Origin: Kudoa neothunni
Lineage: Eukaryota; Animalia; Cnidaria
DNA length: 64,000 nucleotides
Assembly (NCBI GenBank): GCA_964304625.1
Contig: OZ199840.1
Location: forward strand, 9,803,315 to 9,867,314
Direction of reading: 5' to 3'
Shown: one piece after another, positions 605 through 55,190 of the stretch
How positions within the stretch are numbered: position 1 is the stretch's first letter
Layout of the letters: every line of letters begins with the position of its first letter
Translations under genes and position numbers: made by a program
Notes under the pieces: model-generated
Databases searched by the model: none
What the model was told of the DNA's origin: nothing
Seen by the model: the letters and a program-made list of their open reading frames with translations, nothing else

Positions 605-606
605 TT

Positions 607-32347: not shown

Positions 32348-32760
32348 TCATGTCGTACCGATATTTTCAAATTGCAAAACATGTCGATGTATTCTTTCCA
32401 GGGTTGATTCACAATTTCTCCTTTCAGGCACGATCACTAGAGTTTTGAGAGTATAGTGAAATTCATCAATCACTCGATCTATAGTGCTAATAGACACATT
32501 TAAATCGAGTTCATCCAAAACCTTTTGCTTGAGCTCCTTTAACGTTATCTTGGAGTTTTCGTCCATCCATGAAATAATTTTTTCTTTCTGTTTTAATAAC
32601 GAAATAGAGCGTTTGTCGCCTCGTCTAGGTTTCAGTTCGATGACTCCTGTCTTTTGAAATTTCGAAATTATTGTGGCCACAGTAGGATAGACCTTGATAA
32701 CTTGATTTGGGAGGCAATCGCAGTAGTGCTCGTTCCAAAAAAAAAATAAGCTCATGTCTT
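32348..32760 (-). mobile_element. Truncated Tc1/IS630-like transposase (HTH region)
   Basis: ITLKELKQKVLDELDLNVSISTIDRVIDEFHYTLKTLVIVPERRNCESTLE is homologous to the neighbouring element. Confidence 0.75.
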
Positions 32761-33099
32761 TGCTCCCTTTTACCCATGGAAATCGTCGTCTTTTGCTTCC
32801 GTTCCTGCTTGGATATTTGAACAGGAGAAGTTTCATGTTCACAGGAATCTGAATCAGACGAGCCCTCGATATTACCATGATGACGATCAATAATTAATAT
32901 TACTTAATGTAGATAATGTACCAACTGCTATATTGATACAATATTATAATCAGAAGCTCGGATTTTTTTGGAAAAATAAATGATAATTTTTTAAAGCAAA
33001 AAAAAACTAATCCGCTCCTTAACGTTTAAGAAATACCCAATGATGTCCCATCCTTTTTATGTTTATGTTATGTTTTTTCATTAAATTAATGCAGTTTAT

Positions 33100-34169: not shown

Positions 34170-34616
34170 CTTAAAAATATGAATATATGCAATATTTACA
34201 AGAGCATTTTAATAATATATAATTTATATAAACTAATTAATTAATAAGAAATACTTATTGACTTCGCCGCTTGACAGAATGTTCCTCGTAGTCTTACGTG
34301 ATTGTAACAAATCTAGCTATTAGGCAACTAAACTTACATCTCTTTTGCGGTGTTCACCTTAATTGGAAAAAGCCTTATTTTAAAAAGATGAGTCTCAGAT
34401 TTCCACGAAAAATCTCATATTGATCGGGAGACCTATAATACTAAAAAATAATGTGTTAATTCGATTATATCCATATATTGTTGTAACATGTGGATTATAA
34501 GGGTTGCACTCCATCAATCACAGATACGCGATCGAGAGCAGTGCGGTATGGCACCGTCGTCTTTTAATTCAAAGAACCTAGGTTCTAATCCCGGTTCGGA
34601 CCTTGTGTTGCAACTT

Positions 34617-34927
34617 TTATAAAATACACGAGGTTATAATAAACCAAATAATAAAATTCGTTAAATTTATCCACAGGCGACCTTCACAACCTCTTTTATA
34701 GCGTCTCCATATTTGGTGGTCCCTACATTTTTTATCCCCGGTATAAAAATAATGGTTGAACAAAATTTTATCGCATCCGCGTTTTGTTTGGAGCATGACG
34801 AATGAGTTTTCATTTTTTTCCATGTTGAAGATTATACACCCACAGCCATATGTGAACTAAACGCGCATGAAATAATATCACCGGCGAGTGCGGGGGAATC
34901 GCCAAAAATTCGCCGTATGTTTCCCTC
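34617..34927 (-). mobile_element. Mutator/MULE-like fragment (FLYWCH-type N-terminus plus putative terminus)
   Basis: TKRGCDKILFNHYFY...WRRYKRGCEGRLWI resembles the FLYWCH domain of MULE transposases; GC-rich terminal segment at 34880-34927. Confidence 0.55.
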
Positions 34928-37900
34928 TAATAACAATAAGATTCGTGTACTTAAAGTTTATTCCTGCCATCAAATCACATTATTTTAACTAATATAAATT
35001 ATTTCGGATAAATAATAATTTAAGGTATTCTTACATAATAAAACACACTTCATTATTTTTTTATCTCGCTTTAACTATTGATTACTAAATATGTTATGTA
35101 TTTAATACCACTTAAAATATCTTTAATATTAAATATATTTACTTTTACAATATGTTGGCATTGGAATTGAAAAACTATAATAATTTTACTAATAATTATT
35201 GAAAACAATTATATTAATAATTTAAGCGACGAAGAAAATATTAAATAAAACTTTCTTAAGTCGATACTTATAAACTTGGTCTTATAATAAGTCTAGTTAA
35301 CATAATAAATTACACAACAAAAATTGTAACCAATTCATTATTTTATTATATTAAATATAATAAGGTTAATCTTCAAATTTTCAAAATATTTCCATCTAGC
35401 TGCACAAATAAACCTTATGAATGTTTATTAAAAAGATTTAAACTGTTAATCATTAATAAAAGATGGCTAAGTACATATTTATTGGCAATAAACTTGTAAT
35501 TTTTTACTTATTTTTATAATATTTTATCACGATTAATATTATAATAATACTAGAAAGTATTAATTAGGCTAGTATAAAATATTAAATGGAGTATTAATTA
35601 AAATGTTTAACGATAAAAGATAGCCTAAACTTTTAAGTAAACATAAGTAGGAAGACTTGGAATTAGTTTTTATAGAAATATTGGATAAAATAAGCAATTA
35701 TAAAATATTCATTTAAATTAGTTATGAATCATGATAAATAATATTATTCTTTATCTACTAATAAAATGAATATTTGTATCATTTTTACTTATTTCTGTAG
35801 GCCATAAAACCTCCTATTCCTCCGATAACTATAATTGCAACAACAACCGACACTATAATGCTAAACGAAAAAATTAACAAACAACTACTCACATCACATA
35901 CATTGTTTTATTGCCTGACCTATAAAATAATAATCACATAAAAAAATAATTATAAAATAAATTTACGTTGATTTGCTACCAGATGCACCTAAAATTAGAG
36001 TTATACAATATTTCTAAGTATTTAAGAATAGGATTACCTTTATCGATTTCAGCTGTACCAAATACTGACCTATCCCTGCTGTAGTATACGGTCAGATGAT
36101 AGTCGTTTAGATCCTCAACATTTTCAATCGTAAAAGTCTTACAATTCGGAAGGGTCGTACAATCACCTCCTCCGTTACTCACACATTTTTTAACGGTTGG
36201 TCTAGCCACGTCGTTTGAATTAATTAACACCCATTTACATTTTGACTCTCCATCTATTCCAACTGGAAGTGTGGTCGTTATCTGTAATGTTTTATCGTCA
36301 CGTACTATACTAACAAACAATTTTTTTGTTAGATCAGTTGGGTCTTCAACTATTGGCTCTAAATTATATTTTTTAGTAATCGTTAATGATGTATAATTTT
36401 TAATATATATTGTAAAATAATAACTTGGGGCTAGAATGATAGAAGTTTCTTCAGAACGATCAACAGCTGTAACCAAAATTTTATATTCTTTCGAAGCATC
36501 GTAACCTTCACTGAATATAATATTGTTACAATATGGTACTTCGGAGCATGATTTAGTATCGTTCGATGTAGTTTCTGACGATTGTTCTACTGTACCAACT
36601 CTTGCAATGGAAACATTTTCGACATTAATTAATGATTCAGCCAATGGTGATTGAATTGGTTCTGCAGGACATGAATATATTGTATCCCACGATTCTCCAT
36701 TTTTAACAGTGATTTTATAATGGCATTTCGCGTCACTAATCGGTGTAGACAATTTTCCTATCACTTTATATCCTTTGTCCAATGTTCCCTTCGTAAGAGT
36801 AAGAGTCGAATAAGCTATCGTATTTATATAAATAATAGATCATTTAACTATAGTACTCGTTTTAATATTTGTGAATGTGGTAGAACCATATTCTTCATAA
36901 GCAACCACTTTAATATCGTAGGTAGTATTGGGTTCGAGATTAATCAAGGTCTTGGACTCCTTACATAAACCTCTACAAGGATTACTATCTGAACAAGTTG
37001 CCTCCACAAATTTATTTTTTTCTGCTATACTGACAAAGTAATCACATGTGGGTTCAGTTGCTTCGGTTCCGGGATCACCGACAATTGCTTTAACTATGCT
37101 AGTCGAATCACCCGCAGTAGGTTTTGCAGTATCAAAACTTTTGTCCGTTTTTTTATCTTAAATTATTAATGAATTCGAATATTATGATTATATTGTTACT
37201 TGTTTGGACGAAAATATATTCCTTAAAATCTGCATAATTTGTTATAGTAGTAGTAGATGCAACTACTATCATTATAGGTCTTCCTTCCGGTAAACCTGTA
37301 ACCGTGTGGGCAGCGGCACAAACGGTAGGGCAATTGGTACCGCTACCTGATGTGCAAGTTGGAGCTTTGGTATAAGAAGTTCTAGTAGTATCGGCATGGT
37401 AGTATTTAATTGCACATTCAGTAAATTTTTCGACATTACCATCTGGCGCGAATAATTTCAAATTTATTTTCACCCCTGCGTCCCCCCATTGTTATTAGTG
37501 CATGTTCGTTTTCACTTGGTTCGACAATGGCTATTAAAGCATTAAAAAAGTTTTACTTAATTTTTTACCAAATTTTATATATTTAAATCCTTCAAATGTA
37601 TCGTCTCCTTGTGTTGCTAATTTGTGGTGTCTTTTCTGGACCAATATTTCAACAATTGGCTTTGTTTGATCAAGTGTGAGTTCTACGTCGTTACAGGGAG
37701 CGTAGCATAGTTTGTCAGTCCCTCCGCATTTTGAGGAAAAGGCAGTTGGTTGTGCAGATGTAGCAGCTGGCGCATCCCGGATACTAAATAAGCATATCTC
37801 ACTAGGAATTGGATTAGTAAATTTAAGTTGATATTTAGTATTCGCATCCGCAGATTTGTATCTAACGTAGAATTGTGGCTTGTAAATGTCAATATTTTCT

Positions 37901-39990
37901 TTCATATAATAGTTTGGCATGTGGTAGTAGAAAATCGGGTAATCAGTGCATCTCACTTCAAAATAAGGTATTTTTACGCCATATTCAACCGCGTCAATAT
38001 TCTGTCCACTTGCAGATTCCGTACAACTAGTTCCTTTAGGCACTTCTTTATATTTTATTCCTTTATAATAAATTGGACAAGCTGCTGGTTTACAAGTTGT
38101 GGCTTTTAACCTCAGTAAATAATCATCATGCGTGGATGCCGCTATTTTTGGATCCACTAATAGTGCTAAGAATTCATTAATAATGAAAATTACCCAGTTA
38201 TCATACGTATTGCTAAACCAAACACTTTGGCTCCATTTTGAACACCATCCGCTTTTAGGTCACTTGCAGATGCTGCATCTTTTATATAAATATATTTTGA
38301 TCTGGGTGAAAGCTTGTTATATTCCAAAATATTGTCTTTCCCAGCACAAGTTCGGATACACTTATTATTAACGTCATTTTCATTACCTTCACATCTTTCG
38401 AAATCTTCATAGGTTGTACCCAATGAATTTTCTCGCATTATTCGGCATTTTTTACTGTTTTGATAATCCGTTCCTTTCAGCTCGATATGAAATTTAAAAT
38501 TGCCGACAGTGGCCTCATGTATCTGATAATACACTTCTCTAGTAGGAGCAGATGCTGAAGCGTCAGCTGAGTAACATTCATTCGAAACTGAACAATAATT
38601 ACTAAGTAAAAGATATAATTAATTTACGTGAAAATATAATGAGAAAAGAGTGAAGAATTATATTCGGAGTCATTACAAATTAAACCAAAAAAGTGTATCC
38701 GTTATAATATCGATTCCTTTATTATACTTCGTGATTCAATTCAAAGTATTCTATGAATACTTCCGCAAATCATTCATATCTTCTCTATTGTTAATAATCT
38801 CAGATATGACTTTAGATATGATTTGTGATAAACTATATGAAAATTCATTAATTTATTTTGTAAATGTTGATTGTTCTTTAAATGTTTGATCTATTTTTAA
38901 TATTTATGACATAATTTTACTGCAAAAGATTATACAATTTTATCAACCATTAATTTTTTATTTTCTGCCTAGTTAAACTTTATATAAAATTTTTTATTGA
39001 ATACGTGCATAAATATAATATAATTAAACAAATTTGTGTATGATTGCCTATTTATTTTTTTGTTAGATACGATTTATCCTAAAAATAATATATCTTGTTT
39101 CATTAATTAGAAGCTAAAGATATTGTTAGGTACGATTGTCTCGTTTATTTTAATTACGTATCGTTTTGTTAAATAATCCACATTTTTGCCTATTTTTTTG
39201 TTGTTATATGCATTACCTTTTCATAACTAACTAACTAACGAAAGAGCAATAGCACATCAATCATTAGAATTGTCATTTTATTATTTAATCACAATTAAAT
39301 CAAGATATATATCCACGAATAATAATTCGAATAGTCAATTATATCTCTTAAGTATATTTAGATAAAATTCTTATTAGTATTTAAAGAATAAATATTATCA
39401 TAAATAGCTATATTTTAAACTTTATAAAAAAATTTAGCAATAACTTTAAAATTCAACGAATAATATAGAATAATAATATATTTTAATAATTTTAACTTCG
39501 AATTTATCAAAAATGTTGCAATCGTTTTTTCGTATATATTAACAACATAAAGACAAACAATTTAATCAAACAAAATAAAATGTTTTTTAAATAAATTTCT
39601 TTTAAATTATAAATCTGTTTAAAAAGCTTATTAAGGTTTCGAATAATGTATTTATACGTATTTTTATAATTAGTTAACTTATTATTTTAATTATTTTTAA
39701 TAATTTTTAACACAGACGTTAACAATAAAAGTAAATGTAAAAACGTGAATTTTCTTAATTGCTCAAAGTAGCATTATAATTTCTTTTTCAATAGATCCCA
39801 TTAGGCTAAGTTAAAAATTCTACCTTCAGCCTCTGTACAGAAAATATATAATAAAAATTTGTATCATTATGAATACTGTCATCAATTTAAGAAAAAATAT
39901 AAAAAAATAATCCAATTATTTAGAATTGAAAAATGACTTACTATATTTTTATTTTCATAAATTAAGTCATTTCTACGAGATTTCCTGTTT
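34928..39990 (-). repeat. ~5-kb segmental duplication unit (copy 4 with flanks), paired with ~51447-56690
   Basis: Both the downstream (~850 bp) and upstream (~1.3 kb) non-coding flanks align nearly base for base with those of copy 5. Confidence 0.9.
35785..38673 (-). CDS. Cys-rich FN3-like type I membrane protein, copy 4
   Basis: Same exon structure; N-terminus MTPNIILHSFLIIFSLSNECYS; C-terminus ..LIGGIGG-type TM helix then FMAYRNK*. Confidence 0.9.
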
Positions 39991-41125
39991 AATAAAGCTA
40001 AGGGATGTTCAACATTATACAAAAATTATTTTCAGTGAATAAAATTCAGCGCAAATGTATTTATAACTAATTTTTCGTATAATAATTTATAACGAAAAAT
40101 TTGAAAAAATTTCCTTAGGTCTGGTCTAGTCTAATTTAAAGATTCAAAATATTTTTGCATATAAATAATTAATATATATTTACTGTAATACTCGAAAAGT
40201 TTAATTATAATAAGTTTCAGTTTAATATTAACTTATTAATAGGGGTGAATTTGAATAATGATAAAAAATAATTTTTAAATTAAAAAAATATCGAAAATAT
40301 GTGAGCAATTATAATTATTTTGCCTCATTAAAAATTATAAATGTATACGGCTATGCCCAATGAGGAATTAATAATATTTTTAAAGTAGTTTTTTCTGCTG
40401 TATCTTTGGTTCCTTTATTTCTTTATTTGGCCGAAGAAGATTCGAAACAAGAAAATTAGTACATAGTGATGATTTTTGTATATCAGACTATTTCATTATC
40501 CACATATTTTTATTAAAAATAATGATATACCCGTAATGTTAATGCTACATTTGAACGTGGTAATAAGTTTTGCGACAATAATAATACGAATAAATGCGTT
40601 TACCTTAAGATTTTTTAGTTTATATTATGACCTAATGAATCATATTATGATCTTAAAAATATCATGCCGCTCGCGAGCTACGAGTTGTCTGTTTCTATCC
40701 GAAATAAACTGTGCAAATACTTAATATAACTTAATTATAAAAATTAACTGATTAAATTAGTATTATATTATTATTATCTCTATATAAGAAATTACAAATA
40801 AAAATTTATGTTAAATAAATAATAAATCTAACGACTTTTAATACATATACCTAAATTAAATTTTTATATCAAGTGAAATACATAAACTAAGACTGTCGGT
40901 CACTAATAAATTAATATTAAAATAGAAAAGATTAAACAATATTAATAAAACGAGTATATACTGGCGATATTAATTTTAAAGAAAAAAATATATCAAAATT
41001 AAAATAATATTATAGTGAGATAATAAATACTATTCTAAATATAAATTTATGCTCTAAATCCTAAATAATATCATTAGTAGTGATAATTGAGTCTGCAGTG
41101 TCTGATCAGGATGATTTGATAGGGG

Positions 41126-44107
41126 TTATTTCAACTTCCAAAAAGCGAAAATGTATACCAACCTAAATATGTGTAATTAGAAAGTATTAGTCATTACTTA
41201 TCTAATGATTTACAGCGCTATTATTGCGACCCCAAAAACTGAGAATATAGTAATTATCAAGTATCCTAAGCAGAGCAATTTAGATAATTGTTATTATTCG
41301 ACGATTACTTTTAGCAGTTAATCCCATGAGTCTTTCCGTAATAAAAACATTTCTAAAAAATATCATTATATTTTTAGAAAAATTATCAAATTTTATTTAT
41401 ACAATATTAAATTAATTTTTATATAATACAATAAATGAAATTACGAGTTAATAAATATAGAAGGAACGAATTTTTCATTTTTGATGACCATAAAATCTTC
41501 TGGGCTAATAAAAATTATAGAAAAAAACTAATTATTGTCACTACATAACAAAATATGCACAACGTCCTTCTTTGTTGCAATACTGTTATATTGTTTAGTA
41601 AAGTTTTCGCAAATTAAAAGATTACTTGATTTTTCCCACACACAACGTTGTTGCAAGAAGTAAAATTTTTGTATTCGGGCTCGCATACTCCCATTACACA
41701 AAACTAAATATAGCCGAATTCACATTGATTAAATTAACATCATTACTATTCCTTTAGGACATTTTATATTTCTACAATTATTTCTATTTAAGTCCGCATC
41801 AGTGCATTTGTTATTGAGACACATCTAATAGATAAAAATTTTATTTAGAATAAATCGACAAAAAATGTTACTTTATTTTCACCACACTTATGGCCGTTTG
41901 GAATTAATCCAAAAATAGATGCAGAAACATTTTTTACATCAACTCTATAATTGGATTAAATTTTTATTAATTTTTTTATTATTACACGCACGATTCATCC
42001 TCTTTCGTAGTTCTGTAACCAAATCCGCTCCATTTAGTTTCATTGTTCGCTAAGCAGGAAAGGACGCCACAATATGATCGTCTAATAAAGTTAATTAATA
42101 TTAAATAAGAATCTTATTCTACTCAGTTCTTTCATTATATGGAGTTAGATCGTAACTGCCTCTCCTGTCCGTTAGTTCGTTACACTTTGTTTCGTGAGTA
42201 ATTTTCACTATGAGTCCGGTTAATGTTCCAAAAAAAACATCGTAACAAATGCACATACTAGAATTATGTTGGATTTTACATTGTTGGTTCGCATTTGGAC
42301 ATATTCCATTAGCACAATATGCCTGAAAATAATATATAAAAAAACTCTGAATTATAGTTGTCTACTAACATTGTTAGAGCGACAAGGTGTTCCATCTGGC
42401 TTGGCAACTGTCATCGGGCACTAAATAAATTTTCTTTTATATTACGTATCGCATATACATATATGCACATATGGACTATTTCCCAAACATTGTATTTCAA
42501 AATTGCATTCATCAGCTCTACGACACACATGATTTCTTTTAAACTAGATAATAATTATCACAGTTTATCGACAACAAAATCCATCATAACATAAATATGG
42601 TTACTTTGCAGGAAGAACAACACTCACCTGCGGAGCACTCTGCTCCAGGTTTAAGTTTGCATGTTGTCATGTCGCAGCATTTGAATTCACCATTGTTGAC
42701 ACAATTAGCCTCAAACCCACAGTCGCACTCCTCGCCTGGGTCTATCATGCCGTTTCCACACACTTGTAATACAGGATGGTTGACGTTGTTCTAGGAAATA
42801 TTTGATGGAATTATTTATTAAATTACCAATCCATAACATATATTTAATCACAAGTAGAAAGTCATTTTCATGATATTTCTCAAGGTGTTTATTTATCATT
42901 TCGAAGCTCTTTTCACTAAATGCTGTTGGATATGGCAAGTTTATTGGCCTAAAACCTCAATAAATGACACAACTCATTTCATTAATATATACCATGGGCC
43001 ATACACAGAACGCATAATACATCCGTATAGTTCATCGAGACATTTGCTCTCTAAAAATATTATTATTTATGTTTATTACATCCATATTTCTTCACTAATT
43101 TTAAAGCTTTAACTTACCTAATTTTTCAACATGTGAGCAACCCATTAGGTGGCCTAATTCATGAGAGAATGTTCTATGATCCATTTGCCGGTCATATTGT
43201 TCACCTCGTAATATCTGTTTGCAGGGTGAGTCCATTATACAACAATTGACATTAAACCTTAACAAGGGATACACCGAATGCTGGAAGTGTATTGGGATAA
43301 TATCTTGATAAGCCAACATTTGTCGTGCTTTCCCAATAATCTCGATAACTAGGTTCAAAATTTTCTACTGACTTACACCGAAACAAATTACACGAACATT
43401 AAATGATATCCACTATTGATTGAGGATTTTTCAATGAAATTTAGAAAGTCACGGGCCATCATTACCAAGTTACGGCCCTTTTCCTCGAAAGGGGTCCAAT
43501 CGAATGACTTTGCTATTATTTTTATGTTGTGCCATGCAAAAGACTATATTTTCGTTTAAAATAATTGATTATCATAAAAAGCGATAAATACCTGCATTGA
43601 TCTTACTACCGTGTCTCTCATATAGGTGGGTCTTTTATCATTAATTATAAGCTAGAGCATTTGATAAAAGAAAATAGACCATGTTGGTACCGTGCTCAAA
43701 CCTTTATATATGTTTATATGAACGTATCGAGGTTTATCCATTCTTTTAATGTATCTAATATTTGAAGGCAACTAAAATACGTAATAATTTATATGTTCAG
43801 CCAACTATTCACTTGATATTTGTTGGTAGCATCTACAGTAAAAATTAAGTTCAAATTCAGAATTTATTAGGGAAGTAAAAAATTAAGAAACCTTTTTTAG
43901 TTATTGAAATAAGAAAAATAAAATTTATAATGTTAGATAACATTATAATACAAACGTTTTCTTATTCGTTAAAGTCTTTCTCAGTAGTTAATCCGAAAAT
44001 CATGGGTTTACCTTAACTGTCCTACAATCAGATCAATATATTTTTGTGGTTTTACCGATAAAAAATATAGTGAAATGAAATTGATAATAATTCCAACATA
44101 AGCATTG
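41126..44107 (-). CDS. ADAM-family metalloprotease-disintegrin, multi-exon, membrane-anchored (5' end uncertain)
   Basis: Zinc motif [11 protein letters not shown] (43131-43163), CIM Met-turn, disintegrin [16 protein letters not shown]...[25 protein letters not shown], Cys-rich region [14 protein letters not shown], and [31 protein letters not shown] followed by WKLK*. The first exons could not be joined cleanly. Confidence 0.88.
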
Positions 44108-45498
44108 TATATTATATTTATTGCTAAAATAACTATATGAAAATATTTAATAATTTTGTTAACATTATAAAGAGTCTTTTATGGGAAACTGACAAAATAA
44201 TCTTATTTATGAAATTTTTAGGAAAAGATCAAGGTATTTCTTCTGAGTATTCTTGGATATTTCAGAATTACTTAGACAAACAATAATTAGTTAGTCCTAA
44301 ATTACGACTAAAATCCCCTAATTTTGTATTATTTTGCTGATATAACTTATTCTATAATAATTGTTAATGGATGTTGTGTTTATTAGTCTTATATTTTTCG
44401 TTAGAAATGCAACTTCACACATTCATCACAAATTTGGTCGTGGTAATAGGATAGAGGCTATTTTAACGATAGATATTATTCGGGCGACACCTGTTTTGAT
44501 TGTATTAATTTGTCACATATAAAAGCGAAGAGATGAGCTAGAATCAATGGTTAAAATGTAGAATAATGGTTGTAATCCAAAGGAAGTGGCTATTGACAAG
44601 GATCACAATGTCCAAGTAGGTATAGTTTTGACTGTATTTTATTATTTTTGGCCCACCACTAACCACTAACGCTCCTAGGGGCAAAAAATAATTAAATACA
44701 GCAGATTCTAAACAATGGACTTCATAAATCGACCATAAATAGAAGTTAGTGGGATTAAAAGCTTCCGTGTCAATCTCCAGTGCCTAATACAAATCAGCGA
44801 TCACGATAAAAATCGAACCTGTTGGTTATTTTATTTTTTTGTATTTGTTATCGATAACAGTTGCTGTTATCTATCATATAAATAAGTGCTAGCCTCTCGC
44901 AGTTATTTCCACAAGCCATACCATTTAATTGATCGAGTAAAGCATGCTTTATTTATCCTAAAATTTTAATGTGACAACTATGATTTTTTATCAATTGTCG
45001 TATTTCATTATTAGCGATTTCCTATTATTAATTCTGTCTATAATAATCAGAAATTCATATTTCCTGCGAGCATTAGATGTTGAATTGTATCAAATGCTTA
45101 ACGTTAATATCAAAAATAATTTATTATAATTAATCAACTCCTCCTTACCATTAAATGTTCAACATATTTCATGCTAATTCGTTATAAAAATTCAGGATCA
45201 ATCTACGAACCAATTATAGGTAGCAGGTTCTGTAAAATTTAATCGATATAAAGCTTATGATTAGGAGTTCATGGGATTACAAATTTTCATTGAACTGGTG
45301 TGCATGCCGTTTGAATTTTAATTTTTATTCAAATAGGCATATGCCTAATAATAATGTTTGATTTTTAAAAATCCAGTCAAATTGAACTTGATCCTATGTT
45401 ATACTTACTTAATCGGATTCAACGTGCTATTTAATAAGCAAACTCTAAGTATTTATTATCCTCATCAAATCTACTTCTTAATAAAATTTAACACTTGT

Positions 45499-45502
<4 letters not shown>

Positions 45503-45537
<35 letters not shown>
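45503..45537. repeat. (TA)n microsatellite
   Basis: Direct reading; a shorter one lies at ~22548-22570. Confidence 0.9.
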
Positions 45538-45542
<5 letters not shown>

Positions 45543-46506
45543 TTTAAATATTCCATAAAATTGTGAATTAATAAACAAAATTGAATATTTTGGCTTAGTT
45601 ATTATTTTTTTTATTAAAGAGACTTAACAAATGTATTGTTTTGCATTCCCTCAATTTTCGCGATTTTCGTAGAACCCCGTCATTTTGATTTAACGAGGCT
45701 CCCATATGCTCAATTATGTATTTACTTATTCAGTAAATCAATTCATTTCAATAATTTGTTCGAATAGACTGATGTTAGAGCTAGAAATGACATTAATAAC
45801 GATCCACAGGCAGGGTTGCCACGAAACGTACCAAAACGGTACGTTTTCTCCCTAAATAAAGGTATTGATACTTTAAATATGTCTTCGAAGCAAGTTGGCA
45901 CGTTTTAGATCAATGAGTTTGAGATAAAATTATTATAAATGCATGCCACATGATGAGATAATGTGTTAGAAGATTTGGCACAAATATCCACTAATATCGC
46001 CCAAATCTTCAAAATGAACATAACGAATTACAAATTTTATTTAACATTGAGTGTCAGAAAATAATGTACCTGCTGCATAAGATAGCTGTCTCTTGAGAAA
46101 GTTATTCGGAAAATATTGGAAGAATGCACAGTTCTCACAACATTTCCCAAGTTTGGACCATAAGAAAACCAGGGTAAAACTTCACCTAAAATATTTGCAC
46201 CTATATTTAAACCAATAAATAAAATATACTGTGCCGTTTTTATTTTTTCCCCACATTCAATGAATTCAACGTTGAATTACGAGATAAGAGTTCATAAACT
46301 AAGGAGTTTTGTTGTAAATAGTATTAATGCTCTAACACTTTTGGGGTGTAATATATCCCAAAACGATATTAGTATTATTATTATTGGCATATCTTCCTTA
46401 TTAGTTTTGTCCGCGACCTTACATTCTCACTATTCCTTAACTTTATGTTACTCTTTAAATTTTATTTAAAAAAATTTGTAATAAACTAAAGTTTAAATAA
46501 AAAATA

Positions 46507-48581
46507 CCCTCCAACACCTTTGGGGTGAAAAACACCCCAGATTTTTTTCGGCTTAAATAATAGGAATAAATATATTTATTACGGATGTGTAATACTAATG
46601 ACATAAAACCTATAATTATTCCAAAATCTTGAGGTTTTTAAAGTAATTACATGAATTCACCCGCGACGTGGTTATCTAATATAATAAATGCGCTCTCCTT
46701 AAAATTTGATAGTGTTGAAATGAGCGGTCTTAGTGAGTATAATGACGATTTATGTTCATCCGGCAGCGAATTCGAGGATCAAATTTCAGAAGAATATAAA
46801 ATTAGTGATGATGAAGCTGAAGCTGAAATTCCGGAAGCACACAGCAACGTGTTAACAAGCAAACGCAGAATTACATGAAGCCTATCCAAACCACCTACAA
46901 CTAAAACATGCCAAGAAAACATTATGAATTCTTTACTCGGAGCTACAGCTTATACGACATCCAAAATACTATACCTGCTAGATTGTCTCTTGTTTTTCAA
47001 TAATGATATATGACATCAAATTATTTCATTCACCAACATGTTTGGAGTACACCGTTTTAAAGAAAACTGGATTAACTTAGATCTTGTGGAATTTAAAGGT
47101 TACCCTGGTCTTCTCCTATTAATGGCTACACATAAAGACCGACAAGAGCCTTTATGCGAGCTCTTCAGCGTAAAAGGAGGAAAGGAGATATACAGAAAGC
47201 TTTTTTCATTCTATCGATTCACTCAAATCGCTCGGGCACTCCATTATGGTGATTTTAATACACGACTGGAACGAAAAAAAGTTGACAAATTTTGCCCCTT
47301 CTGTGATGTATGAAGTCAATGGATTGATTTATTACCAAGATGTAACCGTAGACGAGAAACTAGTTTCGTTCAAGGGGAAGTGCTTATTTCGACAGTACAT
47401 GCCGATTAAATCGACAAAGTATGGCCTGAAGTTTTTTTTATTAGCCGATCCAGTGGCAAACCATGTCTGTAACATCAATATATATCTCGGGTGAAATAAC
47501 TACGAAACCATTCGACAATGCGGATTGGGTGGAAGTGTTGTTCTTTCACTGTCAACATCACTATTCGATTCAGGTAGGAATGTTGTAGCAGACAATTTTT
47601 TTTCGTCATCCTCCATTGCGAAAAATTTTTTCAGAAAAAGCTTACGTTCTTGGGAACAGTTCGGAAAACCAAAAAGAAGATACCTCCTTATTTTCTTCCC
47701 TCAAGAAAAATGACCTTCTACAGTAGTACTTTTGTGTATTACGGAAAATTCATGCTGACTGACGTCTTATGTTTGTAATAAGTCAGAAGCGGGAACTCTG
47801 TTGACGAGTGGTACTGTTGATGATTCTGTTAGCGACGAGTTAACTAAGTGCAAGCTCCAAGTGATTCTAAATTATAACTAAACGAAAGGGAGAATCGATA
47901 ACGTCGATAGGATGTTAGCGTCGGTTTCTGTACGCAGATTCACAAGAAGATGGCCTCTAATAATGTTTTTTAACATGGTGGATTTATCTCTAATCGACGC
48001 ATTTGCATTATTTAAGGTTATTCTTAATGATAGCACCACAAATAGGTGTAATTTTTTGAGGCAGATGGCAGAATAACTTTACATTCCCTTATTGACACAA
48101 AATTCGTCCGAAAATAATGTCATCCAGAAAACATCTAAGAAAATTCTCTCCCCGAAAAAGAATCCACCTATGAACTCCAAACAATACAGATGTGAGTACT
48201 GTAAGCGAAGTAAAGATAAAAAAAATAAATGGTGCCAGAGATGCTACAGATATTATTGTTTAGATCACTCCTCAATTAATTGTTTTGGTTGCAATAAATA
48301 AAAATATTTTTTGTTACATTTTCATTAATACGTGTATCAAGTTAATTATTTTTGCAAAAATCTATTTATAAACATTAAGTTGACTGATAATATCCAACGG
48401 TATTTTACGAACACTTGTCGATGTTATTACGAAAAGATCTAATGCTTGAAACTAACACATATTTTCCTCCGTTCTCTTCCGGTGATTTTTGTATTATTCC
48501 AAAATTATGATCATTCGATTTATCTAAGTATTGTCGTACAATAAAAATGTGGTTGTTTTACACCCCAAAAGTGTTCGAGGG
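46507..48581 (+). mobile_element. Full-length but decayed piggyBac transposon
   Basis: TIRs CCCTCCAACACCTTTGGGGTG / CCCTCGAACACTTTTGGGGTG. Transposase remnants VTVDEKLVSFKGKCLFRQYMPIKSTKYGLKF, GRNVVADNFFSS, TKGRIDNVD, RRWPLIMFFNMVD and a C-terminal Cys-rich finger. Confidence 0.93.
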
Positions 48582-49650
48582 GTAATGGTATGCTTAACGG
48601 CCACTAAAATTCGTTGTGATGCTATGTTTATTTTTAATTATTTTTTTCACAGTTATATAATTATTTTAAAAGTTGAAGCATACAAAATTTTTTCACAAAT
48701 TTTCATTTCTAGCTTTTGACAATTCTTTGCACTTATCCTCACGTTGTTATTATAATCCACCACATGATTTCCTTCTATTTATTGTTTTACTCATATTTAA
48801 TGACTTCTAATGAGTTATTAGTTAATATTACTTTGTATAATATTATTATTATTTATTGAAGGCCACTGAATCATTTATAAATATCAAACAACAGTAATTA
48901 GAGTTGGCGTTAATTTAATAAGGAAAAATGGTACAGTGGAGATTATATAAACTTTTTTAAGAAAATTTAGGGATGGAATAACTTGGTTACAACTACTTTA
49001 GTTTATACATTTTTTTCATATGATTTTCTATAAGAAAATTAGCATGTATTTTATTTTTATTTTTTAAAAGTTAACGATGACTTTTGCGTATCATTATTTT
49101 CCATTCTTTTAGGTTAAATGATATTAGTTGTTTTTTTTAATTGAGAGATAAATATATACTACAAATCAAAATTATTCTAGGATAGATATGACATTTGTAT
49201 GGAAAACGTTTAAAGAATATCTATCTAATTATATTTTAGTAATAAGTTCTATGCATACTTTAATATATTTTTATTGTCGAGCAATTTTCAGTAATTTACA
49301 AAATGCGTTTTTATTCTGACACCAACATTTTGTAATATGGATTAGAGATTTCAAGCTTGATTCGGGGTTGGATCTTTTTCATATCATTTATTTATTATAA
49401 TATAGTTCATCGTAATAATTATATTTTATGGACTTATTTTATTTTGGAACACAAACATGAAATACATTAAACTCTAACTGTTGTCATAAATGTGACCTTT
49501 ATTTCTTTTATTTTTCTAGGATATCCATAATTTTTAGAATATTTGAACTCGGAATTATTTTAATCAAGATATTATCATAAACGTAATTGCTTATTCATGC
49601 GCCAATAAAAAAAATAGAATTTTATTCCGTCGGATAATATTTATTAATAA

Positions 49651-51387
49651 CTAGCGCTTATGCCCAGCTTTACCTGATACTGTGTTACTGTGTGATGGAA
49701 AATTTTAACTTTTAATTCTATTTTTCTATTTTAATTTAGGCATTTTAAAGCTTGTCATTATTTTCGCATTGTGATGATTTAGATAAACGAAATTATGCGC
49801 ATACTTTCCATTCAAATATAAATAGAGGTATGGCGAGAAATTAATGAGTAAATTAAGTTTATTTTACAAATTATTGGCTAGAAGTATGATGACCTTAATT
49901 CTAAGAGAAATATAATCAGCGATTAAAGTTCAATTATTTATGAAACAAAATCATTAAGTAACTTAAATAGTATTTTCAGTTCTTTTCTAAATTTTTCATT
50001 AAAAATTAATTCACTTAGTTATAAAATTTATTATTAGTCTACAAACGATAAAAAAATGACATCAACCTAAGATGCGTCAGAAATAAAAATATTAATTGTT
50101 ACTCCTTTTTTCGCAATTTTATAATGATGCCAATGATGTTTTAAAAAGCTGTAAGCGGTAACTTAAGTAGTCATTATTGTAATGAAATTTCCCGATTGAT
50201 AAATAAATCCAACTTTGCTTTTTATCAAGAATAATTACTGGTTCAAAAATATACACATTTAATTAATAAAACATGATTAAATCTAAATGTAAAGGTGTTT
50301 TTGGTTTGAAAATTACAGTAATGCTAAAATATTTAAATATCAACTGGTTTTCTTGAAGGAATGCACCCTTTTTAAAAATTAACGTATTGTTTGATTGCCC
50401 TAAAAAAATTTCTTCCTATTGAACTATTCTAAGATTAACGAAAACTTTGTGAAAATATCGGTTAGATCGAATAGACCAATAATTTCTTGTTAATTATATG
50501 TCACCTATTGAGACGGAACTGTATTTTTATGCAGCTTTTATATCATAATGAATTAATGCGAGCCTAAAGAAAACAGTATATTGATTTTATTATTAACCTT
50601 AAGGTTTGGGGATAGGGAATAATTAGGTAACTAAGAACTTAAACATTCTTTAAAAAATTGTCTCATCAAATATAGAAACTTATCGAAAAGACGAATATAA
50701 TTTCAATCTCAATCTCAATCGATATATTTTATAAAAAGAAATTTTCATTTAAGAATTTATCACAAAAATTTAATTATATGAATACTCTACACACATCTCA
50801 TATCGGTGTTAGAATGTGTATAGAGACCCAAATTATTCCAACATAGGAACAACTTTAATCTCGAATTATGTGTTTTAATTAAATTGATCATAATCATTTT
50901 CGCTTAACTATATCCATAACGCTTGAAAAATGAAAATAAATCCTAAATAATTTGGTTATTTTTCAAATTTTAAAGAAAATGCAACAACTCTTGTAAATGT
51001 GGTGTTAATGGTTTTATCTGTCTTAAAATTATTCCAAATAGGCATATGTAACATTTTTGAAACATTATATATCATAATTGCAGATTCTCTTTGTATGCAG
51101 TGAATAAAAGTTTATTCTAATTGAGTATCACTCTGAAGTAAACAAACATCAATATCATTACTATCATGTGAGTACCTTTTAATCTGTAAATTGATGTAAA
51201 TCTCCAGAAAATTCCTTAATTCTGATAACGATATTGATTATATTTGTACTAATAAGTAAATGAACGATTTTTATTAATGGTATCATTCATTCAAATGCGA
51301 ACTAAATGTTTTATTTAAAAAAAGTTTCTCTCGCGTACATGTGCACTTGTGGACACAGACAGACACAGGATTTTATATATATATAGA
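49651..51387 (-). mobile_element. Non-autonomous Helitron
   Basis: On the minus strand: 5' A|TCTATATATATAAAATCCTGTGTCTGTCTGTGTCC and 3' caggtaaagctgggcataagcgCTAG|T. Confidence 0.6.
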
Positions 51388-52303
51388 TAGATAACAATCA
51401 AATTCTATGCATAGGTAACTAATAAAATATTTATATTCTTACCTCCAATAACAATAAGATTCGTGTACTTAAAGTTTATTCCTGCCATCAAATCACATTA
51501 TTTTAACTAATATAAATTATTTCGGATAAATAATAATTTAAGGTATTATTATATAATAAAACACACTTCATTATTTTTTTATCTCGCTTTAACTATTGAT
51601 TACTAAATATGTTATGTATTTAATACCAATTAAAATATCTTTAATATTAAATATATTTACTTTTACAATATGTTGACTTTGGAATTGAAAAACTATAATA
51701 ATTTTACTAATAATTATTGAAAACAATTATATTAATAATTTAAGAGACGAAGAAAATATTAAATAAAACTTTCTTAAGTCGATACTTATAAACTTGGTCT
51801 TATAATAAGTCTAGTTAACATAATAAATTACACAACAAAAACTGTAACCAATTCATTATTTTATTATATTAAATATAATAAGGTTAATCTTCAAATTTTC
51901 AAAATATTTCCATCTAGCTGCACAAATAAACCTTATGAATGTTTATTAAAAAGATTTAAACTGTTAATCATTAATAAAAGATGGCTAAGTACATATTTAT
52001 TGGCAATAAACTTGTAATTTTTTACTTATTTTTATAATATTTCATCACGATTAATATTATAATAACACTTGAAAGTATTAATTAGGCTAGTATAAAATAT
52101 TAAATGGAGTATTAATTAAAATGATTAACGATGAGCGATAAACTAAACTTTTAAGTAAACATAAATAGGAAGACTTGGAATTAGTTTTTATAGAAATATT
52201 GGATAAGATAAATAATTATAAAATATTCATTTATATTGGTAATGAACCATGATAAATAATATTATTCTTTATCTACTAATAAAATGAATATTTGTATCAT
52301 TTT

Positions 52304-55190
52304 TTATTTATTTCTGTAGGCCATAAAACCTCCTATTCCTCCGATAACTATAATTGCAACAACAACCGACACTATAATGCTAAACGAAAAAATTAAAAAA
52401 CAACTACTCACATCACATACATTGTTTTATTGCCTGACCTATAAAATAATAATCGCATAAAAAAATAATTATAAAATAAATTTACGTTGATTTGCTACCA
52501 GATGCACCTAAAATTAGAGTTATACAATATTTCTAAGTATTTAAGAATAGGATTACCTTTATCAATTTCAGCTGTACCAAATACTGACCTATCCCTGCTG
52601 TAGTATACGGTCAAATGATAGTCGTTTAGATCCTCAACATTTTCAATCGTAAAAGTCTTACAATTCGGAAGGGTCGTACAATCACCTCCTCCGTTACTCA
52701 CACATTTTTTAACGGTTGGTCTAGCCACGTCGTTTGAATTAATTAACACCCATTTACATTTTGACTCTCCATCTATTCCAACTGGAAGTGTGGTCGTTAT
52801 CTGTAATGTTTTATCGTCACGTACTATACTAACAAACAATTTTTTTGTTAGATCAGTTGGGTCTTCAACTATTGGCTCTAAATTATATTTTTTAGTAATC
52901 GTTAATGATGTATAATTTTTAATATATATTGTAAAATAATAACTTGGGGCTAGAATGATAGAAGTTTCTTCAGAACGATCAACAGCTGTAACCAAAATTT
53001 TATATTCTTTCGAAGCATCGTAACCTTCACTGAATATAATATTGTTACAATATGGTACTTCGGAGCATGATTTAGTATCGTTCGATGTAGTTTCTGACGA
53101 TTGTTCTACTGTACCAACTCTTGCAATGGAAACATTTTCGACATTAATTAATGATTCAGCCAATGGTGATTGAATTGGTTCTGCAGGACATGAATATATT
53201 GTATCCCACGATTCTCCATTTTTAACAGTGATTTTATAATGGCATTTCGCGTCACTAATCGGTGTAGACAATTTTCCTATCACTTTATATCCTTTGTCCA
53301 ATGTTCCCTTCGTAAGAGTAAGAGTCGAATAAGCTATCGTATTTATATAAATAATAGTTCATTCAATTATTGTACTCGTTTTAATATTGGTGAATGTGGT
53401 AGAACCATATTCTTCATATGCAACCACTTTAATATCGTAGGTAGTATTCGGTTCGAGATTAATCAAGGTCTTGGGCTCCTTACATAAACCTCTACAAGGA
53501 TTACTATCTGAACAAGTTGCCTCCACAAATTTATTTTTTTCTGCTATACTGACAAAGTAATCACATGTGGGTTCAGTTGTTTCGGTTCCGGGATCACCGA
53601 CAATTGCTTTAACTATGCTAGTTGAATCACCTGCAGAAGGTTTTTCAGTATTAAAATTTTTGTCAGTTTTTTTATCTTAAATTAAAGATGAATTCGAATA
53701 TTATGATAATATTGTTACTTGTTTGGACGAAAATATATTCCTTAAAATCCGAACTCTCATTTATATTACTTTTGGATATCACTAACGTGACCGCTCTTCC
53801 GTCCGGTAAACCTGTAACCGTGTAGGCAGCGGTACAAACGGTAGGGCAATCGGTACCGCTACCTGATGTGCAAGTTGGAGCTTTGGTATAAGTATTACTG
53901 GTAGTATCGGCATTGTAGTATTTAATTGCACATTGAGAAAATTTTTCGACATTACCATCTGGCGCGAATAATTTCAAATTTATTTTCACCCCTGCGTTCT
54001 CCACGGTTATTAGTGCATTTTCGTTTCCATTTGGCTCAATAATCGCTATAATAGTATTAAAAAAATATTATTTTTAATTTTTACCAAATTTTTTATATTT
54101 ATATCCCTCAAACGATCCGTCTTGTTTTTTCTGTATTCCATGATGTCTCCTCTGGACCAATATTTCAACAATTGATTTAGTTGGTTCTAGAGTGAGTTCT
54201 ACGTCGTTACAGGGAGCATAGCATAATTGATCAGTTTCGCCGCATTTTGAAGAATATTCTGCGTTATCTTGAGTTGTAGCACTCGACCCATCCCTGATAT
54301 TAAACAAGCATATTTCACTAGGAATTGGATTCGTAAATTTAAGTTGGTATTTAGTTTTTTCGGTTTCAGATTTATATCTAACGTAGAATTGTGGCTTGTA
54401 AATGTCTATATTTTCTTTCATATAATAGTTTGGCATGTGGTAATAGAAAATCGGGTAATCAGTGCATCTCACTTCAAAATATGGTATTTTTACGCCATAT
54501 TCCACTGCGTCAACATCACTTCCATTTGCAGAAGTCGAACAGTTTTCTCCTTGAGGCACTTCTTTATATTTTATTCCTTTATAATAAATTGGACAAGCCG
54601 CTGGTTTACAAGTTGTGGCTTTTAACCTCAGTAAATAATCGTTATGCGTAGATGCCCCTATGTTTGGATCCACCAATAGTGCTAAGAATTCATTAATAAT
54701 GAAAATTACACAGTTATCATACGTATTGCTAAACCAAACACTTTGGCTCCACTTTTAACACCACCGTTTTTTAGGCCGTCTGCGGATACTTCATCTTTTA
54801 TATAAATATATTTTGATCTGGGTGAAAGCTTGTCGTAATCATGCTTATTATCAACCCCAGCACAAGTTCGGATACACTTATTATTAACATCACTCTCCTT
54901 ACCTTCACATGTTTGGATTTCATCGTAGTTGGTACCCAATGAATTTTCTCGCATTATGTGGCATGTTTTACTGTTTTGATAATCCGTTCCTTTCAGCTCG
55001 ATATGAAATTTAAAATTGGCGACATCGGCCTCATGTATCTGATAATACACTTCTCTAGTTGGAGCAGCGGATGAAGCGTCAGCTGAATAACATTCATTTG
55101 AAACTGAACAACAATTAATAAAATCAAGTATATAATCAACTTACGTGAAAATATAATGAGAAAAGTGTGAAGAATTATATTCGGAGTCAT
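52304..55190 (-). CDS. Cys-rich FN3-like type I membrane protein, copy 5
   Basis: Same exon structure; N-terminus MTPNIILHTFLIIFS; the 268-aa ORF is identical to that of copy 4; C-terminus FMAYRNK*. Confidence 0.9.

Follow-up and report, generated by a model that had tools for sequence, protein, structure and literature searches.

Two neighbouring gene copies of Kudoa neothunni, here called c4 and c5, combine an identical membrane-proximal half with a strongly diverged distal half, and this polarised pattern is attributed here to interlocus gene conversion rather than to differing selection on the two halves, a reading that we hold with a probability of about 0.75. Both copies lie in the window, that is, the whole 64,000-nt stretch that was analysed (assembly GCA_964304625.1, contig OZ199840.1, positions 9,803,315 to 9,867,314 of the forward strand), and all coordinates below are positions within it. 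We observe a mosaic structure among the copies, homogenisation at silent sites, dN/dS values that lie mostly below one, and a polarity that recurs throughout the family. In the mechanism that we propose, a tract of about 1 kb, comprising the membrane-proximal exons, their introns and the transmembrane (TM) exon, would have been copied very recently between c4 and c5, and repeated conversion would keep the 3′ half of the whole cluster similar. The distal exons 2–4 would have escaped full homogenisation and would form an older patchwork of tracts of 30 to ~550 nt swapped among paralogues, their Cys-bearing frameworks being held by purifying selection and their connecting stretches evolving at a roughly neutral rate. 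As part of the same reading, and at the same confidence for the whole, c4 and c5 are best explained from their sequences as tandem paralogues, both intact, that belong to a large family of type I membrane proteins specific to this lineage.

Gene models and predicted architecture

The c4 gene (35785..38673, minus strand) was modelled by frame-preserving enumeration of GT-AG introns, with frames that are open in c4, in c5 and in m09, a third copy located upstream of the window. Its predicted exons are E1, encoding the signal peptide (38673-38628), E2 (38587-38207), E3 (38165-37569), E4 (37475-37200), the FN3-like E5 (37156-36857), E6a (36814-36425), E6b (36358-36038), E7 (35988-35967), and E8, which encodes the TM helix followed by an RNK tail and the stop codon (35860-35785). 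In the predicted model all introns are GT-AG and mostly 40–66 nt long, with the exceptions of intron 3 (93 nt) and intron 7 (106 nt), and their phase is 1 throughout, the last intron excepted; splice sites are conserved in all three copies compared (c4, c5 and m09), each of which also has its own signal-peptide exon and TM exon. Intron 3 of c4 could alternatively be read as two introns flanking a 15-nt micro-exon (37530-37516). The c5 gene (52304..55190, minus strand) follows the same exon plan with every exon open, its coordinates being obtained by alignment: E1 55190-55145, E2 55103-54723, E3 54681-54085, E4 53991-53719, E5 53675-53376, E6a 53333-52944, E6b 52877-52557, E7 52507-52486, and E8 52379-52304.

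The membrane-proximal open reading frame of 268 residues, which the earlier note had described as one ORF, in fact runs through a predicted 66-nt phase-1 intron (GTTATT...ATTTAG; 36359-36424 in c4, minus strand) that separates E6a from E6b. This intron is in frame and stop-free in c4, c5 and m09, which explains why it was seen as one continuous frame; in other copies the site is interrupted by a TAA or lengthened by a 36-nt insertion, and distant paralogues align across it as two separate exons.

The predicted layout of the protein consists of a signal peptide, six disulfide-containing, beta-rich modules on phase-1 exons, at least one of them an FN3-like sandwich, and a single TM helix, beyond which only a few cytoplasmic residues (RNK) remain; the C-terminus reads ...GGFMAYRNK followed by the stop codon in c4, c5 and m09. 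Cysteines account for 29 of the 749 residues (3.9%), with Cx3C spacings such as CPTVC and CRGLC. The AF2 model of E5 (pLDDT 87.4, pTM 0.80) shows an FN3 fold: nearly all of its top Foldseek matches in the PDB are FN3 domains or FN3-derived monobodies (probability 0.99–1.0, TM 0.45–0.61, E only ~0.01), and a profile search of the PDB matches FN3 only, while against the Pfam fn3 profile (PF00041) the exon scores 22.9 bits (E 9.8e-5), under the gathering cut-off of 25. The five modules other than E5 are without detectable relatives, the Pfam searches of E2 and E4 giving no match, and the AF2-type model of E3 is poor (pLDDT 56). Designating the variable stretches of exon 3 as loops thus relies on this weak model together with the indels in the alignment. 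The family would be located at the cell surface.

Divergence and mosaic ancestry of the two copies

The two copies sit on the arms of a duplication of about 5 kb (c4 arm 34921..39978; c5 arm 51439..56692; blastn and global alignment), which lie 16.5 kb apart and are 93.15% identical over 4715 aligned positions (34921-39623), with an extra piece of 330 nt (39649-39978 of the c4 arm) matching the c5 arm at 90.6%. Most of what the earlier note had described at this level is borne out. Translation confirms that the frames at 35976-36782 and 52495-53301 (minus strand) encode the same 268 residues and differ only synonymously, at 36045 and 36095; intron 2 (38166-38206 versus 54682-54722) differs at 1 of 41 nt; and the paired loops of exon 3, including KLATQGDDT versus GIQKKQDGS, and its frameworks, including CYAPC, are as quoted. 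The divergence of exon 2 likewise stands, with the count now at 27 of 126 residues in place of about 25 of 110, and exon 3 differs at 43 of 198. The near-identity reported for the flanks applies to 34994-35593 (~1.7%) but not to 35594-35792 (7.5%) or to the 5′ flank (5.6%), and of the introns only intron 2 bears out the claim of faster divergence in exons, as introns 1 and 3 (8/40 and 20/91 differences, 20–22%) are as diverged as synonymous sites, the dS of E2 (0.21) and E3 (0.43) being comparable to the divergence of these two introns (0.20 and 0.22). Toward the 3′ end, introns 4 and 5 differ at 4/43 and 4/42 sites, introns 6ab and 6 show no difference, and intron 7 shows 2 in 106 nt; dS is 0.012 over the E6 frame taken as one exon, and when this is split E6a is identical and E6b has a dS of 0.03. 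The longest identical stretch measures 744 nt (36095 to 36839), whereas random placement of the 327 differing columns, repeated 10,000 times, never gave more than 200, and the unevenness of the divergence is far beyond chance.

A three-way comparison of c4, c5 and m09 resolves this unevenness into blocks. Informative sites form 135 runs where 251.8 ± 9 are expected, and as many as 47 sites follow one another in a single run, a length that never exceeds 17 in shuffled data. The trees of neighbouring segments conflict, segment S2 joining m09 with c5 (100/99), S3 joining m09 with c4 (100/97), and S4 again joining m09 with c5 (100/100). The recent c4/c5 conversion tract (35793..36838, minus strand, as for all blocks that follow) holds E6a, the in-frame intron, E6b, introns 6 and 7, E7 and the TM exon; it contains 4 differences in ~1 kb, none of them within 36096-36838, and m09 differs from both c4 and c5 at 12 sites in it. 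The adjoining block (36839..37379) extends over E5, intron 4 and the 3′ part of E4; here c5 shows no difference from m09, and c4 departs from both at 47 consecutive informative sites, in agreement with the S4 tree; at 34 of these 47 sites c4 has the base of the c2/m26 group, and its positions 37191-37274 are 95% identical to m26 and 92% to c2 versus 75% to c5 and m09. The relationship is reversed at 37591..37790 (second half of E3, loops 2 and 3; S3 tree), where c4 goes with m09, c5 is odd, and loop 3 of c5 has a c2-like patch of ~30 nt. In the block 37791..38490 (first half of E3, intron 2 and most of E2; S2 tree), c5 again goes with m09 and c4 is odd, save for a 54-nt patch (38163-38216) that includes intron 2 and in which c4 equals c5 and m09 differs.

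The block limits cut across exon boundaries, and sharp blocks with conflicting, well-supported trees are a signature of interlocus gene conversion. The replacement part of the "targeted segment replacement" proposed in the earlier note therefore stands, as interlocus gene conversion, and nothing supports its being targeted. For most of the distal blocks unique to c4 or to c5, the assembly contains no donor of more than 73% identity; we infer that these blocks reflect either old divergence or donors that were lost or purged from the assembly.

The same polarity is seen across the cluster and the family, which yields 162 six-frame matches spread over all three chromosomes and retains the six-exon plan in 20 distant loci. 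Relative to c4, the 3′ half of the cluster shows a dS of 0.06–0.26 and intron divergence mostly of 0.02–0.2 (0.04–0.08 cluster-wide for introns 6ab, 6 and 7), whereas the 5′ half shows a dS of 0.7–1.6 and intron divergence of 0.33–0.49. Four other paralogue groups repeat the pattern, most pairs having a pS of 0.2–0.55 in E2–E4 versus 0–0.16 in E5–E6b, and between distant paralogues E5 and E6b retain 44–75% identity versus 30–60% for E2 and E4. Eight copies are open through E2–E6b (c2, c3, c4, c5, m40, m26, m20 and m09), and c1 and m54 are pseudogenes.

Several of these copies are probably alleles. The stretch 1..44634 of the window is colinear with the 44.3 kb upstream of it at 94–99.4% identity, and that upstream stretch runs up to a 200-N scaffold gap directly before window base 1; the two contigs overlap from the very first base of one to the very last base of the other. 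Given this dovetail overlap and the colinearity across the gap, m40, m26, m20 and m09 are probably the other haplotype of c1, c2, c3 and c4, and not further paralogues. The assembly was built from ~7× HiFi coverage, with a reported QV of 48.5 and an N50 of 12.0 Mb (PMC12239612); it totals 40.26 Mb in three large scaffolds, one of them 12.04 Mb, plus an 18-kb contig without tRNAs.

Selection and competing explanations

Diversifying selection on surface loops, one of two alternatives offered in the earlier note, would as the main cause of the distal divergence, with conversion secondary, recall antigen or receptor families under host pressure; we consider this unlikely. Its appeal lies in the distribution of the variation, which in 27 paralogues is concentrated, indels included, in the same connectors, while the Cys and aromatic frameworks on either side of them are invariant, connector columns having a pN/pS 3–10 times that of framework columns. 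The selection measures used here are pairwise counts rather than codon site models. Between c4 and c5, dN/dS is 0.61 in E2, 0.31 in E3, 1.0 in E4 and 0.26 in E5, that is, below one in E2, E3, E5 and E6 and about one in E4, with exon-wide ratios of 0.26–0.64 that are significantly below one in E3, and dS itself is high (0.21–0.43). Variable columns, defined independently from 16–20 distant paralogues only, show no excess of replacement (pN/pS 0.6–1.7, all p > 0.25), and conserved columns of E2 and E3 have a pN/pS of 0.08–0.5. Single 15-codon windows reach ~1.3–1.6, and the pN/pS of E4 ranges over 0.9–2.6 among close pairs (m26–m47, p = 0.03; c2–m26, p = 0.06; both uncorrected) and reaches 2.5–2.6 in two close pairs, so that some positive selection may act alongside conversion; once multiple tests are allowed for, however, no column class or exon is significantly above one. 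Furthermore, divergence at synonymous sites and in introns 1 and 3 matches that at replacement sites, which selection on amino acids cannot yield, and the ancestry is mosaic, recombination being known to inflate dN/dS tests. The comparison to CDRs is apt for the variable connectors between invariant Cys-bearing frameworks, which are found family-wide, although relaxed constraint explains the pattern equally well. The converse proposal, that purifying selection alone holds the membrane-proximal half invariant, accords with the better conservation of the proximal exons in distant paralogues too, but its probability is next to nil: the identity also takes in three introns, the synonymous sites and some of the 3′ flank, none of which protein selection can hold, and the proximal half has thus been homogenised rather than conserved by selection. 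Conversion tracts leave just such a contrast, an identical half, a diverged half and one conserved intron, which is not evidence for positive selection.

Two further explanations were weighed. The identical halves could be an assembly artefact, if a low-coverage meta-assembly had been collapsed or polished to a consensus or if one copy were a false duplication, and the coverage together with the residual haplotypic duplication present before purging (PMC12239612), of which the dovetail overlap adjoining the locus is a leftover, lends this some colour. It is nevertheless highly improbable, as both copies sit on a single contig that has no gaps, separated by unrelated sequence, the duplication extends over just 5 kb, the 744-nt identical tract is much shorter than HiFi reads, the reported QV is 48.5, and the same polarity appears in many paralogue pairs on other chromosomes; moreover, the c4-specific blocks 5′ of the tract, in exons 2–4, are matched with 0 differences by contigs from four other runs of the same sample. 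Programmed antigenic variation, in which the copies would be cassettes of a system rewriting an expressed gene through segmental conversion during infection and the c4/m09 differences would be somatic or clonal, is also very unlikely. It would suit m09, whose flanks are of c4 type over more than 14 kb yet whose interior blocks are identical to c5, as well as the existence of potential pseudogene donors (c1 and m54) and the antigenic variation of unknown mechanism reported in other myxozoans (10.64898/2026.02.11.705288). Against it, each intact copy has its own 5′ flank in addition to its signal-peptide and TM exons, no sign of a single expression site plus silent cassettes is seen, and the intergenic DNA of the twin blocks also differs by 1–4%, as for haplotypes or strains. 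Interlocus gene conversion remains our preferred explanation; its polar character could be caused, we infer, by selection against homogenisation of the tips or by heteroduplex rejection above ~20% divergence.

Related systems and significance

Plasmodium var genes, trypanosome VSG genes and the MHC are tandem families of surface proteins that undergo concerted evolution with mosaic gene conversion. The Kudoa family resembles them in its tandem and dispersed paralogues, in short conversion tracts that give segmental mosaics, in its pseudogene members, and in the pairing of a diverse distal part with a conserved one that is membrane-proximal or anchoring. It differs in being unrelated in protein, in its FN3-like modules on phase-1 exons, and in belonging to an animal genome; the diversity observed in it to date lies only among paralogues and between two probable haplotypes. 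An expression-site-plus-cassettes system was considered and set aside, eight copies being open through E2–E6b and c4, c5 and m09 each having a signal-peptide exon and a TM exon.

Among cnidarian families, the Alr complex of Hydractinia (41 genes plus pseudogenes) is similar by description: both are large families of single-pass surface proteins with invariant cysteines, a membrane-proximal part that is FN3-like, and divergent beta-sandwich ectodomain modules that evade motif detection (PMC9546547). The two differ in that Alr forms one genomic complex and many of its tails carry an ITAM or ITIM (PMC9546547), whereas the Kudoa family lies on all three chromosomes and its tail has just a few residues. 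The Giardia-type VSPs and the VSP-like proteins of Sphaerospora molnari share with it a signal peptide, a large Cys-containing ectodomain, a single TM helix and a very short conserved tail, and the S. molnari proteins and the Kudoa family are each a proposed myxozoan immune-evasion family (10.64898/2026.02.11.705288). Membership in this group was rejected, on both Cys content (>10% with many CXXC or CXC motifs in VSPs, against 3.9% with Cx3C spacings) and C-terminal signature (CRGKA or [KR]X[KR]XK[KR], against AYRNK). Contactin, DSCAM, NCAM, CDO and the RPTPs are matched by exon 5 through its fold, and weakly by profile, and these metazoan FN3 adhesion receptors likewise place one module on each phase-1 exon; unlike them, the Kudoa protein has extra disulfides in every module, lacks Ig, kinase and phosphatase parts, and has almost no cytoplasmic domain.

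The distal diversity may be useful to the parasite. It is a tentative possibility that the family constitutes a real variable recognition system, made up of host-facing variant antigens or of self/non-self markers comparable to Alr, with tip diversity reshuffled by conversion. If so, the haplotypes of c4 would already differ by tracts freshly converted from a neighbouring gene, and selection would spare the distal modules from homogenisation while the stalk stays uniform. Myxozoans are fish parasites of economic importance, Kudoa being a tiny parasite of fish muscle, and the molecular basis of the antigenic variation reported in the group is not known (10.64898/2026.02.11.705288); the family provides specific candidate genes for surface antigens or for recognition molecules, and it is a clean case of polar concerted evolution in a very small animal genome.

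The gene family is undescribed. With at least 160 six-frame matches, corresponding to some 80 genes or more, it would account for a sizeable share of the ~5,300 predicted genes, and since that annotation was built from protein hints (PMC12239612), it may have missed the family. Very few transcriptomic reads mapped to the parasite (PMC12239612), and a search of RNA runs gave none that contains this stretch. The genome itself has ~30% GC, introns of 40–50 nt, and nuclear receptor genes.

Gene cluster and protein modules

The window, whose GC content of ~30% makes it AT-rich, carries on its minus strand five copies (c1–c5) of one multi-exon gene with decayed transposons between them, and the gene cluster extends upstream of the window. 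Between the copies lie decayed mobile-element and other gene fragments (1925–2326, 11312–13054, 32348–34169, 43101–43358, and 47038–47494), whose types are a Merlin/IS1595-like transposase, a Helitron-type PIF1 helicase, a Tc1/mariner HTH, a reprolysin-like HExxH sequence, and piggyBac (DDE_Tnp_1_7). The predicted exon model of copy 4, for which frame-preserving GT-AG introns were enumerated and then compared against the other copies, is based on conservation across copies. On the minus strand, it comprises a signal-peptide exon E1 (38673–38628; MTPNIILHSFLIIFS...), six Cys-containing modules of ~90–200 residues each (E2, E3, E4, E5, E6a, and E6b), a 22-nt linker exon E7, and E8 (35860–35785), which encodes IIVSVVVAIIVIGGIGGFMAYRNK followed by the stop codon, giving one TM helix with an almost absent cytoplasmic tail. 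The introns are mostly 40–66 nt long, apart from intron 3 (93 nt) and intron 7 (106 nt), and are in phase 1 in all cases except the last; intron 3 could also be two introns flanking a 15-nt micro-exon. The 268-aa open reading frame (ORF) described in the earlier note reads through a 66-nt phase-1 intron on the minus strand (36359–36424 in copy 4 and 52878–52943 in copy 5), which keeps the frame and lacks a stop only in copies 4 and 5 and the upstream copy m09, where its retention would add 22 residues. The other cluster copies have a TAA or a 36-nt insertion here, and distant paralogues align to E6a and E6b as two gap-separated exons.

Protein searches and folds were made exon by exon. The confident predicted model of exon 5 (pLDDT 87.4, pTM 0.80) has structural neighbours in the PDB that are almost all FN3 domains, while its Pfam fn3 match falls just below threshold and its family profile matches, weakly, only FN3 domains of adhesion receptors. 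Relatives of the other modules were not detectable: no Pfam matches were found for E2, E3, E4, E6a, or E6b, and no PDB profile matches for E3. The variable stretches of exon 3 are predicted non-strand connectors in a poor model (pLDDT 56) and coincide with indel-rich columns in a 27-sequence alignment, which faintly suggests that they are loops. The weak likeness of this poor AF2 model to cytokine and IL-17 receptors with two FN3 domains (TM 0.2–0.3) was not used as evidence, and the crAss-phage ring proteins returned for E3 by a protein-atlas search, recognized below threshold, were rejected as compositional look-alikes. Exon 3 also holds a 100-nt island (37863–37962; ...YPIFYYHMPNYYMKENIDIYKPQFY...) with 80–92% DNA identity in all cluster copies against ~65% in its flanks; its residues are nearly invariant among 27 paralogues. 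In the exon 3 model, however, the island has the lowest folding confidence (pLDDT <50), and it may represent a functional motif or an effect of two-fold degenerate AT-biased codons. A protein search with the 268-aa ORF, under a length filter that excludes full-length relatives, gave no matches, and among 1.8 billion representatives from outside this genome only 14 short fragments were found; the one fragment on a long contig (P0010, L064) proved unrelated and was rejected as a relative.

Mosaic structure of copies 4 and 5

Copies 4 and 5 lie in duplication arms at 34921–39978 and 51439–56692, along which their differences are distributed very unevenly: none in 36096–36838, 10–29% per 100 nt in 37093–38700, and ~5% upstream. 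The contrast drawn in the earlier note between an invariant membrane-proximal half and diverged distal exons is largely borne out, as the 268-aa ORFs at 35976–36782 and 52495–53301 give the same translation and differ only silently, at 36045 and 36095. In intron 2 a single one of 41 nt is changed, against 27 of 126 residues in the adjacent exon 2 and 43 of 198 in exon 3, whose loops differ as quoted in that note. The longest identical stretch between the two copies is 744 nt, compared with a maximum of 200 in 10,000 random placements.

The upstream copy m09 is similar to copies 4 and 5 over its whole length, and in a three-way alignment the informative sites fall into long runs of a single pattern. 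Copies 4 and 5 agree against m09 at 12 sites in 36168–36659; copy 5 and m09 agree against copy 4 at 47 consecutive sites in 36839–37379; copy 4 groups with m09 in 37591–37790, and copy 5 with m09 in 37791–38490, within which 38163–38216, the segment holding intron 2, is shared by copies 4 and 5 and differs in m09; finally, copy 4 and m09 agree against copy 5 at 16 sites in 38509–38623. The number of runs is 135, against 251.8 ± 9 expected from shuffles, and neighbouring segments give conflicting maximum-likelihood trees, with support of 100/97 to 100/100. The limits of these blocks are independent of the exon limits. Some tracts have donor-like matches: 37191–37274 of copy 4 is 95% identical to the upstream copy m26 and 92% to copy 2, but 75% to copy 5 and m09, and the third loop of copy 5 holds a copy 2-like patch of ~30 nt. 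The copy m09 itself has copy 4-type flanks over >14 kb, yet equals copy 5 in E5, intron 4, and intron 5. The mosaic is the product of interlocus gene conversion, whose tracts measure roughly 30–550 nt, plus one recent tract of ~1 kb between copies 4 and 5. Of the two explanations offered in the earlier note, diversifying selection or targeted segment replacement, segment replacement is right, though nothing marks it as targeted, and diversifying selection is unproven.

Silent sites and selection

The silent sites and introns separate homogenisation from selection on the protein. Between copies 4 and 5, dS is 0.012 across the E6 ORF taken as one exon; when E6a and E6b are treated separately, dS is 0.03 in E6b and E6a shows no differences. 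Introns 6ab and 6 likewise show none, and intron 7 shows 2 in 106 nt. Across the cluster copies compared with copy 4, the 3' half has a dS of 0.06–0.26 and an intron divergence of mostly 0.02–0.2 (0.04–0.08 in introns 6ab, 6, and 7), against a dS of 0.7–1.6 and an intron divergence of 0.33–0.49 in the 5' half. Repeated homogenisation can produce such silent-site and intron identity in the 3' half, and purifying selection on the protein cannot. In the distal exons, the proposal that exons diverge faster than their introns stands for intron 2 only, as introns 1 and 3 differ at 8 of 40 and 20 of 91 nt, and the synonymous divergence between copies 4 and 5 (0.21 in E2 and 0.43 in E3) equals that of these two introns. 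Since distal silent sites are as diverged as introns 1 and 3, and at least four times as diverged as the 5' flank (0.056), the excess cannot be due to amino-acid selection; the distal exons are just older, or were imported from diverged copies.

Selection was assessed with Nei-Gojobori counts and Fisher tests. Between copies 4 and 5, dN/dS is 0.61 in E2, 0.31 in E3, 1.0 in E4, and 0.26 in E5. To avoid picking windows by their variability, the variable columns were set from 16–20 distant paralogues alone, and the cluster copies were then measured: no significant replacement excess was found in these predefined columns (pN/pS 0.6–1.7), while the conserved columns of E2 and E3 gave 0.08–0.5. The frameworks are thus constrained and the connectors evolve at about the neutral rate, and positive selection on the distal exons is neither shown nor excluded. 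Exon 4 hints at being the best candidate place for it, with a pN/pS of 0.9–2.6 among close pairs, 2.5–2.6 in two of them, and a best uncorrected p of 0.03 (upstream copies m26 vs m47). Exon 4 (37201–37473; compared in copy 2 and upstream copies m26, m47, and m40) is the sole module with pN/pS of at least 1 among close pairs, and it also holds a Thr/Asn-rich stretch of variable length.

The wider family, the upstream twin blocks, and the genome

An E6 query gave 162 six-frame matches spread over all three chromosomes, and the six-exon plan is kept at 20 distant loci. In four other paralogue groups, pS is 0.2–0.55 in E2–E4 and 0–0.16 in E5–E6b for most pairs, as in loci L047 and L049 (0.37, 0.15, and 0.39 distally against 0.00, 0.01, and 0.03 proximally), so that polar concerted evolution is a property of the family and not peculiar to copies 4 and 5. 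In copy 1 (3948–7000), frameshifts and stop codons interrupt E2, E3, E4, E6a, and E6b, making it a pseudogene, whereas m40, its upstream twin, is intact. The tree of the 3' segment places copy 1 with the upstream copy m54, itself frameshifted in E2 and E3, which suggests conversion between decayed copies. A conserved stalk, a diverse tip, and mosaic conversion are an ordinary process for multigene surface families. The protein family is new, in Myxozoa, a lineage without a known basis of antigenic variation, and a literature search found no paper describing it. It differs from Giardia-type VSPs in its 3.9% Cys, its lack of CXXC repeats, and its different tail; it is similar in outline to Hydractinia Alr, but its members are scattered over the chromosomes and their tail is just a few residues long.

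A 200-N scaffold gap (G000:C3:9803115–9803314) ends at the base just before the window, and window 1–44634 is colinear, at 94–99.4% identity, with the 44.3 kb before the gap (G000:C3:9758816–9803115). This match runs from the first base of one contig to the last base of the other, which is the geometry of two overlapping contigs (a dovetail), and the twin blocks probably reflect an unpurged second haplotype (or a strain present as a co-infection), not a tandem duplication. If they are haplotypes, ~44 kb and four cluster genes may be double-counted in the assembly, the upstream copies m40, m26, m20, and m09 would be alleles of copies 1, 2, 3, and 4, and two alleles of the copy 4 locus would differ by tracts copied from copy 5, the conversion being recent and still segregating. 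Copy 5 is a true paralogue under the haplotype reading, lying beyond the overlap and on the same gap-free contig as copy 4. The conclusion of gene conversion is unchanged if the twin blocks are tandem paralogues. The informative sequencing data were contigs from four runs of one sample, whose loose ends often start with GATC; the runs are probably Hi-C libraries and would thus differ in data type from the HiFi reads behind the assembly contigs. The runs that contain the window's sequence share their species label with very large WGS, RAD-seq, and metatranscriptome runs, as would be expected if the label names the host; the raw DNA and RNA runs under the host's label (X5–X13) come from other samples and are unlikely to contain the parasite. 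Difference-free contigs cover the copy 4-specific blocks 37201–37365, 37105–37346, 37679–37888, and 38393–38625 but, being short, do not span the identical tract, and word depth in the contig runs is higher over the shared 3' half, contig depth not being readable as copy number.

The published K. neothunni genome, from yellowfin tuna data, has 40.2 Mb, a scaffold N50 of 12.0 Mb, and 30.4% GC, in three chromosome-scale scaffolds and a circular mitochondrion, with a median intron of 49 bp; k-mer coverage was ~7, haplotypic duplication was purged, and RNA read mapping was almost nil (PMC12239612). The assembly used here totals 40.26 Mb, with three scaffolds (17.15, 12.04, and 11.05 Mb) and one 18.2-kb contig, on which no tRNA genes were found; Rfam matches were found neither in the window nor on this contig, and no telomere repeats at contig ends. 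A tandem array of ~0.5 kb (62630–63137), in which GAGTAGAG and GAGTAGAA alternate with period 16, is internal, and the telomere reading of its 8-nt repeat was rejected in favour of an internal (GAGTAGAG/GAGTAGAA)n array. Nematode and arthropod origins were rejected, since no cuticle collagen (nematode) or R&R cuticle (arthropod) domains were found genome-wide; ApiAP2 domains were not found either. Nuclear-receptor zinc fingers are present, and the organism is therefore an animal; their three matches genome-wide, all in tandem within 10 kb (G000:C1:10296485–10306767), are very few for an animal.
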